Below are positions 59,126 through 62,827 of a stretch of 64,000 nucleotides of DNA, piece by piece. The position numbers and the translations under genes were made by a program. Position 1 is the first letter of the stretch. Every line of letters starts with the position of its first letter. The stretch lies in sequence record NC_061448.1; one strand, written 5' to 3'. The notes under the pieces were generated by a model that searched no databases, was not told the DNA's origin, and saw only the letters and a program-made list of their open reading frames with translations.

Positions 59126-59574
59126 TGACCTCTTCAATTCGTCCGGCATCCGAAACAGCCGCAATGATCATTGAAAACGTCACTCTCTATTCTCAAGAGA
59201 AGGGACACGACCATACGCTGCCGCGCTTTAAAATGCCCGACACTGCGATACGTCGAATCTCTGGTCATGCTCGCGTTCTGCCTGAAAGTTATATCGAACA
59301 GGTATCTATCGAGCTACAACAACTCGACTGGATGATGATGCGATACAATGCAGGCGAGTTCCTCTTTCTGCACTTTGATATACCGAAGAACTGGACGCGA
59401 TTGAGCGCGAAGCGTGTTGTGCCAAACGACGACCCTAGCGCTGAGTACGATACGTGGACGTTGCCTGAGCTACAGGGCTTCGCTCAACGTAACGACTTCT
59501 TACAGCCCGACGAAGAGGGGTTTCACGATAGAGCGTCATTGATTCGCGCTATCATGCGAGGCGAGACTCACTAA
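59125..59574 (+). CDS. hypothetical protein with C-terminal Rho-N/HeH-like motif
   Basis: YDTWTLPELQGFAQRND...DRASLIRAI. Confidence 0.75.
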   Translation: MTSSIRPASETAAMIIENVTLYSQEKGHDHTLPRFKMPDTAIRRISGHARVLPESYIEQVSIELQQLDWMMMRYNAGEFLFLHFDIPKNWTRLSAKRVVPNDDPSAEYDTWTLPELQGFAQRNDFLQPDEEGFHDRASLIRAIMRGETH

Positions 59575-59609: not shown

Positions 59610-59623
59610 TATCTGCGAAGTAT

Positions 59624-59677
59624 GCAGAAAACTGGACAAAATCGTGGTTGCTATCTGAAAGCGACCTATGATATACT
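59624..59677 (+). promoter_or_regulatory. early promoter P10
   Basis: GCAGAAAACTGGACA, 33 bp, TGaTATACT. Confidence 0.85.
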
Positions 59678-59715: not shown

Positions 59716-59729
59716 ATACTGAGGAGTAT
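59716..59729 (+). promoter_or_regulatory. SD-in-loop hairpin ATACT-GAGG-AGTAT
   Basis: Perfect 5-bp stem. Confidence 0.7.
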
Positions 59730-59734
59730 TAATC

Positions 59735-61330
59735 ATGGCACGTATCGAAACTAACACTAACCTGGTTGGCAAAACTATCGTCCTGCTGAACGGCACCAAA
59801 ACTAAAATCGAAGATGCAATCGCGTCCGGTTACAAAGTGAAAGGCCAGACGAAACGTATCGCTACCCGTTGCGTTGTGAAAGAGGGTGCGCACTTCCGTG
59901 AAATCGAACGTATGAACCTGAGCCAGCTCGAAGACACCGGCGAAGGTTACGTTAAGCTGAAAGAAGCGAAAGCTGCTGGTAAGAAAGCTACCGGCAAGAA
60001 AGACGCTGTGAAAGAGAAAGCGCCTAAGACTTCTGGTAAGAAGACTGGCGGTAAAGTCTCGAAAGAGAAAGAGCCGAAAGTTCGTCGCAAATCTTCCGAA
60101 GAGCAGTCCGAAGATTATCAGAATCTGGCACACGCTATCATCAAAGGCGGCAAGGCGAAACCTGCTGTTGAGATCGAAGCTGTAGACGAAACGCTGACCG
60201 ACGCTGTTGCTAAACGTCTGGTGGCGCTGCTGGAAAACAGCGAAATTGCGAAAGTGTGTGCTGACAACAAAACGCCGATCGCTAACGCACTGTCAGTTGC
60301 TTACGGTGCTGAGTACGCCGAAGAGAACAACACAATGCAGATCACGCTGAGCCTGCAATACGCAATGCCGGTCAAAGATACTGCTGTCGCACCTGAGCTG
60401 GACGAAGCTGTTGCGAAACGTGCCGCCAAGCTCGCGTCTAAGAAGATTGGCAAAGTGCTGGCGAAAGCAATCAAAGCTGCGTTCGACCTCGAAGATGCGA
60501 ACGACCTGCTGCCGGGTACTGTACTGACCACTGACGGTACTGAGTTCGTGTTTGTGGGTGAATCTGCTAAACACGCTGGCAAAGCGCTGATGTATAGCGC
60601 AGACACTGACGGCTTCAAATCATTCGGCGCTGACAAGCTGTCCGACTTCGAAATCGTCGCTGATGAAAGCGAAGAAGAAGAGGAAGAAGTCGAAGAAGAA
60701 GAAGAGGTCGAGGAAGAAGAAGAGGAAGAAGAAGACGGCGAAGACGACGACAACGTAGAAGATGACGGTGAGCCGCAAGACGCCGAGTACGAGTTCGTTG
60801 CTGTCGAAGCTGATCAACTCGAACTGGTCAACAAGAAAGTGACCGCGAAGTATCACGCTGCACTCGCTGAACGTTTCGGTGTAGACGAAGAAGCGCTCGC
60901 CCCTGGCCTGATGTTGACTGACGGCGAAACAACATTCGCTTATCTGGGCTGCGATAGCAAAGGCGGGCTGCTGGTAATCGACCTGTCTGACGACGCAGAC
61001 GAAGAAGACAACGTTCTGGTATACAGCAAAGCTGATATTAAAACGCTGAACGACTTTAGCCCTGTGATCGATAGCGGTGAAGCTGACGACGCCGAAGAGG
61101 AAGACGGCGAAGAAGAAGATACCGAAGAAGAAAACGACTTCGAAGATGAGGACGGTGAAGAGGAAGAGGACGAAGAAGAAGAAGACTTCGAATTTGACGA
61201 CGCACCGAGCGAAGACCTCGAAGACCTGTCCGAAGACGAGCTGCGTGATCGCGCTGTTGAAGCCGGTCTGACTACGCCGCGCAAAGCAGACAAAATGAAC
61301 GCTGCCCAGCTGCGTAAGCTCCTGAAGTAA
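59735..61330 (+). CDS. large acidic modular protein (paralog of 61415-62827)
   Basis: Shared N-domain, two internal repeats, poly-Glu tracts, C-terminal HeH-like motif. Confidence 0.85.
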   Translation: MARIETNTNLVGKTIVLLNGTKTKIEDAIASGYKVKGQTKRIATRCVVKEGAHFREIERMNLSQLEDTGEGYVKLKEAKAAGKKATGKKDAVKEKAPKTSGKKTGGKVSKEKEPKVRRKSSEEQSEDYQNLAHAIIKGGKAKPAVEIEAVDETLTDAVAKRLVALLENSEIAKVCADNKTPIANALSVAYGAEYAEENNTMQITLSLQYAMPVKDTAVAPELDEAVAKRAAKLASKKIGKVLAKAIKAAFDLEDANDLLPGTVLTTDGTEFVFVGESAKHAGKALMYSADTDGFKSFGADKLSDFEIVADESEEEEEEVEEEEEVEEEEEEEEDGEDDDNVEDDGEPQDAEYEFVAVEADQLELVNKKVTAKYHAALAERFGVDEEALAPGLMLTDGETTFAYLGCDSKGGLLVIDLSDDADEEDNVLVYSKADIKTLNDFSPVIDSGEADDAEEEDGEEEDTEEENDFEDEDGEEEEDEEEEDFEFDDAPSEDLEDLSEDELRDRAVEAGLTTPRKADKMNAAQLRKLLK

Positions 61331-61396
61331 TCTCGTAACACTGTAACACTGAAATAAGATGCGGTTCATACAGAGCCGCATCTCTGACAACTAAGC

Positions 61397-61410
61397 TGAT
61401 TGAGGAATCA
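61397..61410 (+). promoter_or_regulatory. SD-in-loop hairpin TGATT-GAGG-AATCA
   Basis: Perfect 5-bp stem. Confidence 0.7.
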
Positions 61411-61414
61411 CACT

Positions 61415-62827
61415 ATGTCAAACGCAAATGCAAACCTGTTGAACGCTCGTGTACGTCGTCTGGACGGTACTGTAACCTACATCAATAAAGTAAATGGCAA
61501 CGGTTATAGCACCAACGCGAAAGGTCCGCAGATTCCGGTCAAGCGTATTGTGCTTGCTGGCAAAACGCTGAAAGAGATTGAGTCGCCGTTAGCGAAAACT
61601 GAGCACGTTCTGATTGACGGTATCACTGTGAAGCTGAACAAGCGCCAGCAGAAAGACCTGCGCAACGACGAGATCGACGTTGATACAATCAAGCCTGACT
61701 TTAGCTCTCTGGTGTATATCGACCCTGAGACAGGCAAGCCCGCTGCTGCGAAAGCACCGAAAGCTGCGAAAGCTGATAAGCCTAAAGCAGGGCTGAAAGC
61801 AACACGCGAGCGTAACGAAGCGAAAGGTCCTTCACTCGCAAATCAGGTCGACGCAGTGATCGCTGGCGCTAATAGCGTAGCGAAACGCGCCGATGCAGCG
61901 AAAGCGTTTGGCATGTTGTGGAAAGATTTGAAAGTTGCCAAGGGCGTTGACGTTGTGAAAGCTCTTGGTCGTAGCTATGTGCGTAAAGCGCTCAAAGCTC
62001 TGGACACCGAAGCTGCTGACCTGACCGAATCAGTCGATATGCTGCCGTCTGATAAAGTTGATCGCAAAGCAGAACTGGCACACACAATCGACGCGACCAT
62101 CGCTGATGCTGATACGCAAGACCGTCGCAAGATGTTGAGCGAAGCGTTCGACATGGACTGGAAAGACGTTAAGAAGCACGGTGGCAAGGGCGTCATCAAG
62201 CACATGGGACGTAAAGCTGCCCAGTCTGCTGTGAATCGTCTGCGTGAGGGCGTTAAGCAAGACACGTTCATCAAGCAAATGCCTATCGCGCTGAAACGTC
62301 TGATTCAAGACGGTAATCTGACGCTGAACAAAGCGCAGATCGAACGTGTGCTGGGTGCGCTTGACCTCGACGTGAAGTTCTACGATGTGGCAATGCAAAC
62401 CCTGCTGGGTAATCTCAAGCTGTCCCTCGACAAGTCTATTGAGAACCCGAAAGTGAAAGAGAAGAAAGCGAAGCACAAACTTGCAGTGCCGACCTACGCT
62501 TCTGAAAAAGAACAGTCCAAGCGTGTGCGCAAAATGACTATCAAGCTCATTAAGCCGCCGAAGAAAGAAATGGAAGCGGCAAGAGCGCACATGAAAGAAT
62601 CGAAAGCAGTCATCGCCAAGAAGCTGGGCATCAAGTCATCTGATGTGAAGCGTGGCCTGATCTGCTACAAGCCGAACGGTGTTGAACTGATGTTCGTCGC
62701 GTGTGACATGACCGGCCCTGTCTTCATCGAGAAAGACGGTAGCGAATGCGTAATGGCACACGCCAACGTAGCACACACCTTCAATCTGACTCTGGGCCCT
62801 AAATCTGAACTGGATGCTGCTGTATGA
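61415..62827 (+). CDS. large Lys/Ala-rich modular protein (paralog of 59735-61330)
   Basis: Shared N- and C-terminal domains; internal ~65-aa tandem repeat. Confidence 0.85.
   Translation: MSNANANLLNARVRRLDGTVTYINKVNGNGYSTNAKGPQIPVKRIVLAGKTLKEIESPLAKTEHVLIDGITVKLNKRQQKDLRNDEIDVDTIKPDFSSLVYIDPETGKPAAAKAPKAAKADKPKAGLKATRERNEAKGPSLANQVDAVIAGANSVAKRADAAKAFGMLWKDLKVAKGVDVVKALGRSYVRKALKALDTEAADLTESVDMLPSDKVDRKAELAHTIDATIADADTQDRRKMLSEAFDMDWKDVKKHGGKGVIKHMGRKAAQSAVNRLREGVKQDTFIKQMPIALKRLIQDGNLTLNKAQIERVLGALDLDVKFYDVAMQTLLGNLKLSLDKSIENPKVKEKKAKHKLAVPTYASEKEQSKRVRKMTIKLIKPPKKEMEAARAHMKESKAVIAKKLGIKSSDVKRGLICYKPNGVELMFVACDMTGPVFIEKDGSECVMAHANVAHTFNLTLGPKSELDAAV

Follow-up and report, generated by a model that had tools for sequence, protein, structure and literature searches.

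Two adjacent genes of the jumbo phage pEa_SNUABM_1 of Erwinia (Alexandravirus; record MZ443776), both annotated as hypothetical, encode proteins that sequence comparison identifies as true relatives: gp319 and gp320 have two small barrel domains (N and M) in common and carry opposite charges. They descend from one modular gene through an old tandem duplication, after which the copies came to bear opposite charges. The analysis covered a window of 64,000 nucleotides of NC_061448.1, in which gp319 (pEaSNUABM1_00319, 531 aa) occupies positions 59735-61330 and gp320 (pEaSNUABM1_00320, 470 aa) positions 61415-62827, both on the + strand. Every peptide quoted in the original prediction, which was made from the letters of the window, is encoded in these two open reading frames where it had been placed. 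The parts of both proteins and the signals around them are collected in Table 1.

Table 1. Features of the gp319-gp320 locus in window coordinates.
Feature	Position	Strand	Remarks
Boxed sigma-70-type promoter (P10)	59623..59677	+	promoter scan; conserved in 17 related loci
5'-leader stem-loop	59681..59703	+	begins a few bases past the -10; RNAfold
gp319 SD-in-tetraloop hairpin	59716..59729	+	ATACT-GAGG-AGTAT
gp319 N domain, aa 1-76	59735..59962	+	small beta barrel, net +5
gp319 Lys-rich disordered linker, aa 77-124	59963..60106	+	net +10, pLDDT 30-35
gp319 middle alpha+beta domain, aa 125-215	60107..60379	+	without gp320 counterpart
gp319 module M1, aa 216-309	60380..60661	+	helices capping a Tudor/SH3-like barrel; hhalign to M2
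gp319 first poly-Glu/Asp tract, aa 310-348	60662..60778	+	net -30; pLDDT < 50
gp319 module M2, aa 349-447	60779..61075	+	hhalign to gp320 C-terminus; pLDDT 84-91
gp319 second acidic tract, aa 448-491	61076..61207	+	net -32; predicted disordered, pLDDT < 50
gp319 C-terminal helix-turn-helix motif, aa 492-531	61208..61327	+	SAP/HeH-like by pattern
GC-rich intercistronic stem-loop, gp319/gp320	61357..61383	+	conserved; U-run absent in this phage
gp320 SD-in-tetraloop hairpin	61397..61410	+	TGATT-GAGG-AATCA
gp320 N domain, aa 1-60 (net +6), then hairpin and helix, aa 61-111	61415..61747	+	hhalign to gp319 N
gp320 Lys/Ala/Pro-rich disordered linker, aa 112-138	61748..61828	+	net +6, pLDDT 33-46
gp320 tandem helical units, aa 139-204 and 205-281	61829..62257	+	first is a lineage-specific duplication
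gp320 conserved middle domain, aa 282-343	62258..62443	+	motif MP..LKRLI.DG.LTLN..Q
gp320 basic linker and long helix, aa 344-404, then module M, aa 405-470	62444..62824	+	hhalign to gp319 M2

Profile alignment, fixed beforehand as the test that could refute the relationship, supported homology for every module that had been claimed. The predicted common N domain was recovered with the cut-out domains (hhalign 95.4%, E 1.7e-8), with the full-length proteins (89.5%, E 2e-6) and by BLASTP (31% identity over 52 aa, E 1e-4). When HMMs of the two N domains were run against all six frames of the genome, each recovered its partner protein alone (E 1e-5; the next match stood at 0.45), and no third paralogue was found. 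A second module had been proposed to occur twice in gp319 and once at the C-terminus of gp320, and this arrangement is upheld by hhalign together with intermediate sequences. M1 and M2 of gp319 align at 95.7% (E 9e-9) and M2 aligns with the gp320 C-terminus at 89.5% (E 2e-6); the direct comparison of M1 with the gp320 C-terminus reaches 31.6% only, a weak score that is bridged by a distant locus (L023), in which the gp320-type M model matches the gp319-like M2 (E 3.7e-8) and the gp319 M2 model matches the gp320-like M (E 2.7e-6). The remaining 40 unrelated domain pairs, run as a control, all scored below 8%. The tandem repeat ascribed to gp320 itself is likewise real (39% identity over 57 aa, E 9e-12; hhalign 98.6%), and its extra copy is an insertion of ~60 aa present in only 5 of 26 family members.

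The two genes are neighbors in all 19 related loci, and the pair is also adjacent in the distant loci L023 and JA13; one distant phage with an adjacent pair has a genome of 222 kb. Three distant relatives (phage NCTB, P0083, and Dickeya JA13) match the gp319 and gp320 families alike. NCTB has the acidic member only, and the gp320 orthologues of Salmondvirus are without detectable M, so that a strict two-partner machine is not universal. Module M also exists on its own: the stand-alone protein P0089 matches it with an E of 9e-10, and in another phage a stand-alone M protein is encoded directly upstream of topoisomerase II.

The opposite charges predicted for the two paralogues are pronounced (net -74 and pI 4.3 for gp319 vs net +28 and pI 9.7 for gp320) and are held throughout both families, at -44 to -84 in all 27 relatives of gp319 and +23 to +34 in all 26 relatives of gp320. 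The distant loci preserve the same polarity, with acidic/basic net charges of -66/+13 in L023 and -60/+29 in JA13. The first ~120-140 residues are basic in both proteins (+15 over 124 aa in gp319, +10 in gp320), and N is the best-conserved part of each, with a mean identity of 76% in the gp319 family. Across that family, the Lys-rich linker keeps its composition and varies in sequence, and the first acidic tract is found in 27 of 27 members at variable length. The ancestral layout consisted of the small basic beta barrel N, a Lys-rich disordered linker, a helical part, and the helix-capped Tudor/SH3-like barrel M. After the duplication, gp319 acquired a second M, a pair of poly-Glu/Asp tracts, and a helix-turn-helix at its end; gp320 remained basic, and one sublineage doubled its helical unit.

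AlphaFold models depict N as a PRC-like small barrel (pLDDT 77-90 in gp319) and M as a helix-capped Tudor/SH3-like barrel. The fold matches have to be read against a background in which, according to the tool's own note, a typical rank-50 match has a Z of 4-5. The N domain of gp319 aligns weakly with the PRC barrels 1pm3 (MTH1859) and 8onw (Z 4.0-4.2, rmsd 2.7-3.3, 52-55 residues aligned), the same entries are found for gp320 N (Z 3.8-3.9), and with RimM included both N domains score 3.8-4.2, no better than that background. Archaeal CdpB1/CdpB2 (8onw, 8qzo), to which N of both proteins aligns at this background level, are paralogues that pair with each other as a heterodimer; gp319 and gp320 are known here as adjacent paralogous genes, and, unlike PRC-barrel proteins, their N domains have no Pfam PRC match and none to any Pfam family at E up to 10. 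For M, many Tudor, KOW, and MscS beta domains give weak and generic matches (Z 4.3-5.5, 46-64 aa, rmsd 2.0-3.0), M1 of gp319 scoring 5.0-5.5 with the GatE N-terminus, MscS-type beta domains, and Spindlin. The entries 7sxi, the capped Tudor domain of Sds3 (Z 4.3-4.4 with M of both proteins), and 7a46 are matched by both gp319 and gp320. The parts outside N and M behave similarly: the middle domain of gp319 is modeled as two helices and a long hairpin (pLDDT 84-90) with generic matches only (Z 4-5.2), and the tandem units of gp320 are all-helical in the AF2 model with generic helical matches (Z up to 5.6). The middle domain of gp320 has the densest invariant columns in its family and is kept in the distant members P0081 and P0085. 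Positions 52-119 of the gp320 family profile, residues 52-115 in gp320 itself, gave a weak match to two uL24 chains (E 0.002; E 0.18 with the single sequence), and the cut-out gp320 domains had no Pfam KOW or L24 match.

Searches of Pfam, PHROGs, and NCBIfam with the whole proteins, ten cut-out domains, and all family members returned only PHROGs of unknown function and sub-threshold noise. With a limit of E 0.001, Foldseek found nothing in the PDB for either model. No usable match came from the ESM Atlas, and BFVD yielded, beyond members of the family, a single weak match to a PaBG protein (probability 0.21); tblastn with the distant members found no relatives in PaBG or Lu11. Against 1.84 billion protein representatives, the gp320 profile had 17 matches only, among which P0088, a TPR-repeat protein, is spurious. 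Matches of the family profiles to PDB sequences were discarded as low-complexity or as artefacts of designed repeat proteins. Across Pfam, PHROGs, NCBIfam, PDB sequences, Foldseek, the Atlas, and the 1.84 billion representatives, no domain of gp319 or gp320 has a relative of known function. N and M are two new small domain families.

The C-terminus of gp319 had been described as HeH-like, and of this description the helix-turn-helix stands in the structural model and the family assignment finds little backing. The motif, ~35 residues long, shows the spacing L..ELR...V...L......M...L..LL and, as modeled, high-confidence helices joined by a short extended turn (helices 500-509, 515-519, and 523-530, pLDDT ~92), a likeness to the SAP, HeH, and Rho-N domains, which bind DNA through a helix-extended-helix. 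The Pfam SAP model (PF02037) scores 15.6 bits on the isolated end, below its gathering threshold of 23.9 (E 0.012), and is absent from whole proteins of the family; a profile built from 20 copies of the motif matched no SAP or Rho structure among PDB sequences. Two copies of this motif are present in gp327, and acidic neighbors in other phages have it too.

The pair opens an early transcription unit with a host-type promoter (sigma-70, extended -10), a phage-specific upstream box, a 5' stem-loop, and SD-in-loop ribosome sites. The predicted position of both genes downstream of P10 is correct, and P10, the last of the boxed sigma-70-type promoters of the phage, belongs to the boxed extended -10 class. 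Its upstream box holds ACTGGACAAAAT (59623-59650), followed by a -35-like TTGCTA (59648-59653) and an extended -10, TGaTATACT, that ends at 59677. At least nine copies of the box exist, every one of them on the + strand within 210.8-245.6 kb of the genome and with CCTATGaTAtAmT after it. The leader stem-loop, which is probably at or close to the 5' end of the transcript, is predicted by RNAfold in 19 of 19 orthologous leaders with differing stems (GACGCA/UGCGUC, GGUGC/GCACC, UUGAGC/GCUCAA, and CUCGGC/GCCGA). The SD-loop hairpins noted for both genes are predicted in almost all orthologues, with compensatory stem changes; in the Salmondvirus clade, for example, the gp319 hairpin reads ATTTCT-TAGG-AGAAAT, with two pairs changed on both sides. 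The same design lies upstream of ~12 genes, nearly all on the + strand, from 201 to 251 kb. An intercistronic stem-loop is likewise predicted in all 19 orthologous spacers, again with differing stem sequences.

The original prediction of high and early expression fits the conserved sigma-70-type boxed promoter, the covarying 5' hairpin, and the SD-in-loop hairpins, and to this extent it is partly supported. Contigs of 14-42 kb from RNA libraries X1-X4 (the longest contig in these runs being 175 kb) carry the locus of a relative ~95% identical, which speaks for presence and not for transcription; in the literature consulted, neither a proteome of virions nor a transcriptome was found for this phage group. 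Past gp320, the operon continues with the supercharged gp323 (+12) and gp324 (-194) and then a terminator-like hairpin. Farther downstream lie gp326 (+15), gp327 (-98), and gp328 (+27), and GyrB-like and GyrA-like (topoisomerase II) genes that had escaped annotation are found at 258.6-262.3 kb, 11 kb downstream.

Our best guess for the pair is a role at DNA or the nucleoid in which gp319, the acidic one, would compete or chaperone, a tentative reading that we consider a real possibility and somewhat short of probable. Both proteins would be produced early and in quantity, and the basic N barrel and linker of each may dock on a common polyanionic ligand, most likely phage DNA or the host nucleoid. 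In such a scheme gp320 would be the coating or bridging partner; gp319 would bring the same docking modules with polyanionic tails that compete with DNA, and might thus limit, chaperone, or displace basic DNA binders, whether gp320 itself or nucleoid proteins of the host. Other supercharged products of the operon could work together with the pair, as could the topoisomerase II encoded downstream. The original prediction had proposed a complex of a nucleic-acid binder with an acidic chaperone, a putative assembly whose contextual support comes from the basic N-terminal parts, the conserved charge, and the downstream topoisomerase II genes. For the role as we state it we counted, besides these, the homology of the modules, the constant adjacency of the two genes, the signals for early and strong expression, the supercharged neighbors in the operon, and the stand-alone M protein next to topoisomerase II in another phage; against it we counted the lack of a domain relative of known function, the weak, generic fold matches (Z at most 5.6), the RNA-library contigs, and the clade members in which one partner or its M is missing. 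HMGB1 and two single-strand binding proteins of phages, T4 gp32 and T7 gp2.5, each join a basic binder to an acidic tail that competes with DNA and recruits partners. The basic N-terminal part of gp319 is similarly joined to long acidic parts; however, gp319 has no HMG box, OB fold, or sequence relation to these proteins, its acidic parts are far longer, and the basic and acidic functions are here divided between two paralogues.

The shared barrels could instead dock on a common host protein, such as RNA polymerase, with the charged parts as effector ends of host-takeover adaptors. This is consistent with the early promoter in front of the genes and with the very high conservation of N, which suggests a conserved partner. 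It also draws on the alignment of M with Tudor-like domains that bind RNA polymerase, namely CarD (Z 4.6, rmsd 2.2, 52 aa), the Mfd RID (Z 4.5), the lobe-bound C-terminal Tudor domain of UvrD (Z 4.4, 51/55 aa), and CdnL (Z 4.0), the values for gp319 M1 with CarD, Mfd RID, and UvrD spanning 4.3-4.6. However, M has no sequence similarity to any domain that binds RNA polymerase or to 7sxi, and unrelated barrels do as well, MscS beta domains, Spindlin, and eukaryotic Tudor domains scoring equal or better; we regard such adaptors as unlikely.

The strong charge of gp319 admits two further readings. T7 Ocr and other known early DNA mimics are acidic, and gp319, gp324, and gp327 could be polyanionic decoys that mimic DNA and act on DNA-binding defences or nucleoid proteins of the host; gp320 would then do something else, and common descent alone would account for the shared domains. 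The conserved extreme negative charge and the location in the early region agree with this proposal, but folded mimics of the Ocr/ArdA type have a rigid acidic fold, and both acidic tracts of gp319 (310-348 and 448-491) are predicted to be disordered (pLDDT < 50). Decoy function also sits poorly with the basic N-terminal part that gp319 retains and leaves its strict adjacency and charge pairing with gp320 unexplained, and we hold it to be improbable. Phage heads, too, contain highly acidic and highly basic proteins, the core and internal proteins of T4 among them, so that gp319 and gp320 might reside inside the virion, be ejected from it, or act as scaffold, their charge being of use in packaging DNA. 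A host-type early promoter and a + strand block leading to topoisomerase II genes mark a context of DNA metabolism rather than of structure, and no PHROG of known structural function was matched; we hold this last reading to be very improbable.

A more ambitious form of the DNA-directed role is one we would bet against, though we find it worth stating: gp319 and gp320, with gp323, gp324, and gp326-gp328, might build a chromatin-like or coacervate compartment in which phage DNA would be organised jointly with the topoisomerase II that the phage encodes. Specific heterotypic contacts would then come from the paralogous N and M barrels, and bulk attraction from the charged tracts, all in a jumbo phage for which no nucleus shell is known. 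SPO1 Gp27 is reported as a phage-encoded condensate driver, a modular early protein with disordered parts that was proposed to organise nucleic-acid transactions (doi 10.1093/nar/gkag742). Gp27 has no sequence relation to gp319 or gp320, for which condensate formation is pure conjecture.

The clade retains an early operon in which extreme charges alternate from gene to gene, headed by a paralogous pair with common docking domains. We know of no means by which jumbo phages outside the nucleus-forming group organise a 260-kb genome in the cell. Together with the downstream topoisomerase II, the operon is a concrete candidate for a genome-organising system, or for a polyanion-based host-takeover device. 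Should the pair merely bind DNA non-specifically, the addition would be modest; either way, gp319 and gp320 offer a clean case of charge divergence following gene duplication.

The window is identical (100%) to the genome of Erwinia phage pEa_SNUABM_1 (MZ443776, 266,939 bp, genus Alexandravirus), in which record coordinates equal window coordinates plus 186,000. All peptides quoted in the original prediction were found in the open reading frames of gp319 and gp320, and its observations hold in every part except the HeH label, which describes a resemblance only.

Sequence comparison identifies gp319 and gp320 as true modular paralogues. BLASTP aligns residues 7–58 of gp319 with 5–56 of gp320 (31% identity, E 1e-4), and comparison of the full-length profiles matches their N-terminal domains (N) with a probability of 89.5% (E 2e-6). 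We gathered 40 relatives of gp319 and 38 of gp320, aligned 27 (A1) and 26 (A2) of them, respectively, split the two alignments into ten domains and compared all 45 pairs by profile. The proposed common N domain was recovered at 95.4% (E 1.7e-8). The second module (M), predicted to occur twice in gp319 and once at the C-terminus of gp320, gave 95.7% for M1 against M2 (E 9e-9), 89.5% for M2 against the gp320 C-terminus (E 2e-6) and 31.6% for M1 against that C-terminus (E 5e-4). The gp320 insert matched the second helical unit of the same protein at 98.6% (E 5e-16), in agreement with the predicted tandem repeat, whose copies are 39% identical over 57 aa (E 9e-12); the first copy is an insertion restricted to 5 of the 26 family members and is thus a lineage-specific duplication. 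The remaining 40 pairs fell below 8%, and the module matches are therefore specific rather than an artefact of composition. When the whole genome was searched in six frames with HMMs, the model of either N domain picked up the other protein alone (E 1e-5 and 1.8e-5; next hit 0.45), and there was no third paralogue.

The weaker link, between M1 and the gp320 C-terminus, is closed at the sequence level by intermediates. On L023, a distant 222-kb contig, the gp320-type M model finds M2 of the gp319-like protein (3.7e-8) and the gp319 M2 model finds M of the gp320-like protein (2.7e-6). The single protein of NCTB, BN7874_073, matches both N models (2.4e-18 and 1.9e-7), as does JA13_307 (each ~1e-8), and the compact protein P0083 by itself matches gp320 (1.2e-13) and gp319 (1e-5). 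P0083 (251 aa) and P0092 (263 aa) run from N through a short hairpin, a basic linker and a helix to M, a layout that is probably near ancestral.

The family is narrow: its members come from Alexandravirus, Y3, Yoloswag, the Dickeya JA phages, Yersinia fHe-Yen9-02, NCTB and a small number of jumbo phages from metagenomes. When 1.84 billion representative proteins were searched with a profile, 17 matched, one of them spurious. Adjacency of the two genes is conserved, in 19 of 19 IMG/VR loci and also in JA13 and L023; NCTB carries the acidic, gp319-like gene only (net charge -118). No M was detectable in the Salmondvirus gp320 orthologues. The predicted opposite charge is likewise a conserved property of the sequences: gp319 has a net charge of -74 (pI 4.3) and gp320 of +28 (pI 9.7), and the signs are kept in all relatives, at -44 to -84 (27/27) and +23 to +34 (26/26), respectively, and in the distant loci L023 (-66/+13) and JA13 (-60/+29). 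Across both families the linkers and charged tracts vary freely in sequence with net charge tightly kept.

Features of the gp319/gp320 locus and related loci (L001, L026 and L028 are contig handles)
Feature	Window	Genome	Contig	Strand	Remarks
Promoter, sigma-70-type, extended -10	59648-59677			+	upstream of gp319; promoter scan
Leader stem-loop	59681-59703			+	kept in related phages, compensatory stem changes
SD-in-tetraloop hairpin, gp319	59716-59729			+	kept in related phages, compensatory stem changes
gp319 (pEaSNUABM1_00319)	59735-61330			+	531 aa; annotated hypothetical protein
GC-rich stem-loop, gp319/gp320 spacer	61357-61383			+	predicted in 19/19 orthologous spacers, stem sequences differ
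SD-loop hairpin, gp320	61397-61410			+	
gp320 (pEaSNUABM1_00320)	61415-62827			+	470 aa; annotated hypothetical protein
uL24-like stretch, gp320 aa 50-110	61565-61744				
SD-tetraloop block	15650-64962	201650-250962			includes gp313, gp316, gp319, gp320, gp324
Alternately supercharged run, gp324 and gp326-gp328	window end and beyond	250962-257199	L001:13963-20200		
Terminator-like hairpin		253989-254010	L001:16990-17011		best intrinsic-terminator-like hairpin of the block
gp331/gp332	outside	258651-262329	L028:2652-6330		annotated hypothetical
P0089 gene			L026:1516-1854		metagenomic phage contig

The promoter and SD-loop hairpins anticipated for the pair are present, and these signals argue for early, efficient expression. 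The promoter is preceded by a conserved box with ACTGGACAAAAT; this box plus -10 arrangement was found in nine copies in the genome, all on the + strand at 210.8–245.6 kb, the gp319 promoter being the last. We take this class to be the phage's only promoters of host type. The box and -10 of the gp319 promoter are also kept in related phages; the early-type signals are conserved. Hairpins presenting the SD in a GAGG tetraloop on a 4–6 bp stem precede ~12 genes, nearly all in the + strand early block (genome 201–251 kb). The spacer stem-loop lacks a U-run here and has one in Yoloswag; possible roles are partial termination, or a part in RNA stability or processing by which the gp319:gp320 ratio is set. 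RNA libraries containing the locus have covering contigs of 14–42 kb (the longest in these runs being 175 kb), so they probably hold phage DNA and say nothing on its transcription. In four small metatranscriptome-labelled runs, a ~95% identical relative has 280 other bases in place of 409 in the gp318 region (window 59160-59570).

The terminator-like hairpin lies directly after gp324 (1004 aa, -194) and points to a transcription unit that opens with gp319 and gp320 and continues via gp321, gp322 and gp323 (+12) to gp324. Downstream are gp326 (+15), gp327 (265 aa, -98), in which the helix-turn-helix motif of the gp319 C-terminus occurs twice, and gp328 (+27, Lys/Ala-rich); alternating strong charge recurs in L023 and NCTB. 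By domain matches, gp331 (DNA_gyraseB, 1.6e-27, plus Toprim and GyrB_C) and the GyrA/topo IV-like gp332 (DNA_topoisoIV, 5.7e-58) are clearly type II topoisomerase subunits. The gene for P0089, a 112-aa stand-alone M protein (E 9e-10 to gp320 M), immediately precedes GyrB-like and GyrA-like topoisomerase genes. Gene content places the pair in a neighbourhood of DNA metabolism.

AlphaFold2 models built with the family alignments (mean pLDDT 70.7 for gp319 and 74.6 for gp320) contain well-defined domains, mostly at 80–93, separated by disordered charged linkers below 50. In both models N is a small beta barrel aligned with the same PRC-barrel entries (1pm3, 8onw; Z 3.8–4.2). M is a helix-capped Tudor/SH3-like barrel; in both models it aligns with the capped Tudor domain of Sds3 (7sxi) and a beta domain of MscS type (7a46), and in gp319 also with Spindlin, CarD, Mfd RID and the C-terminal Tudor domain of UvrD (Z 4.3–5.5). 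All these scores are at a level that the tool calls common, and they give a fold class but no function. Foldseek returned no PDB relatives of either model at E up to 0.001. The gp319 C-terminus is in the model a high-confidence helix-turn-helix, SAP/HeH-like by pattern; it scores 15.6 bits against Pfam SAP, under the 23.9 threshold, and a profile of 20 copies found no solved relative by sequence. Residues 50–110 of gp320 bear a weak recurring likeness to the ribosomal protein uL24 core, including an IDPETGKP-type motif (family profile against two uL24 chains, E 0.002, without Pfam support). Neither protein is a member of any described family; as folds, their small barrels are common.

The N domain and Lys-rich linker of gp319 carry +15 over 124 aa, and its two D/E tracts -30 and -32. 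Acidic tails of HMGB1, T4 gp32 and T7 gp2.5 mimic polyanion, and we liken those of gp319 to them. In the reading that we tentatively prefer, both proteins would attach through their basic N barrel and linker to a polyanion, DNA being the likeliest; gp320 would be the binder, and gp319, with acidic tails that imitate the polyanion, would be a competitor or chaperone. That both dock on a protein of the host, for instance RNA polymerase, is unlikely, and we are just as doubtful that the acidic tracts mark DNA-mimic decoys accompanied by an unrelated gp320. That gp319 and gp320 are virion-internal proteins seems very improbable.

The originally proposed pairing of a nucleic-acid binder with an acidic chaperone is plausible, and genomic context supports it in part. 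What is unusual is the conserved pairing of opposite charges inside an operon of supercharged proteins.
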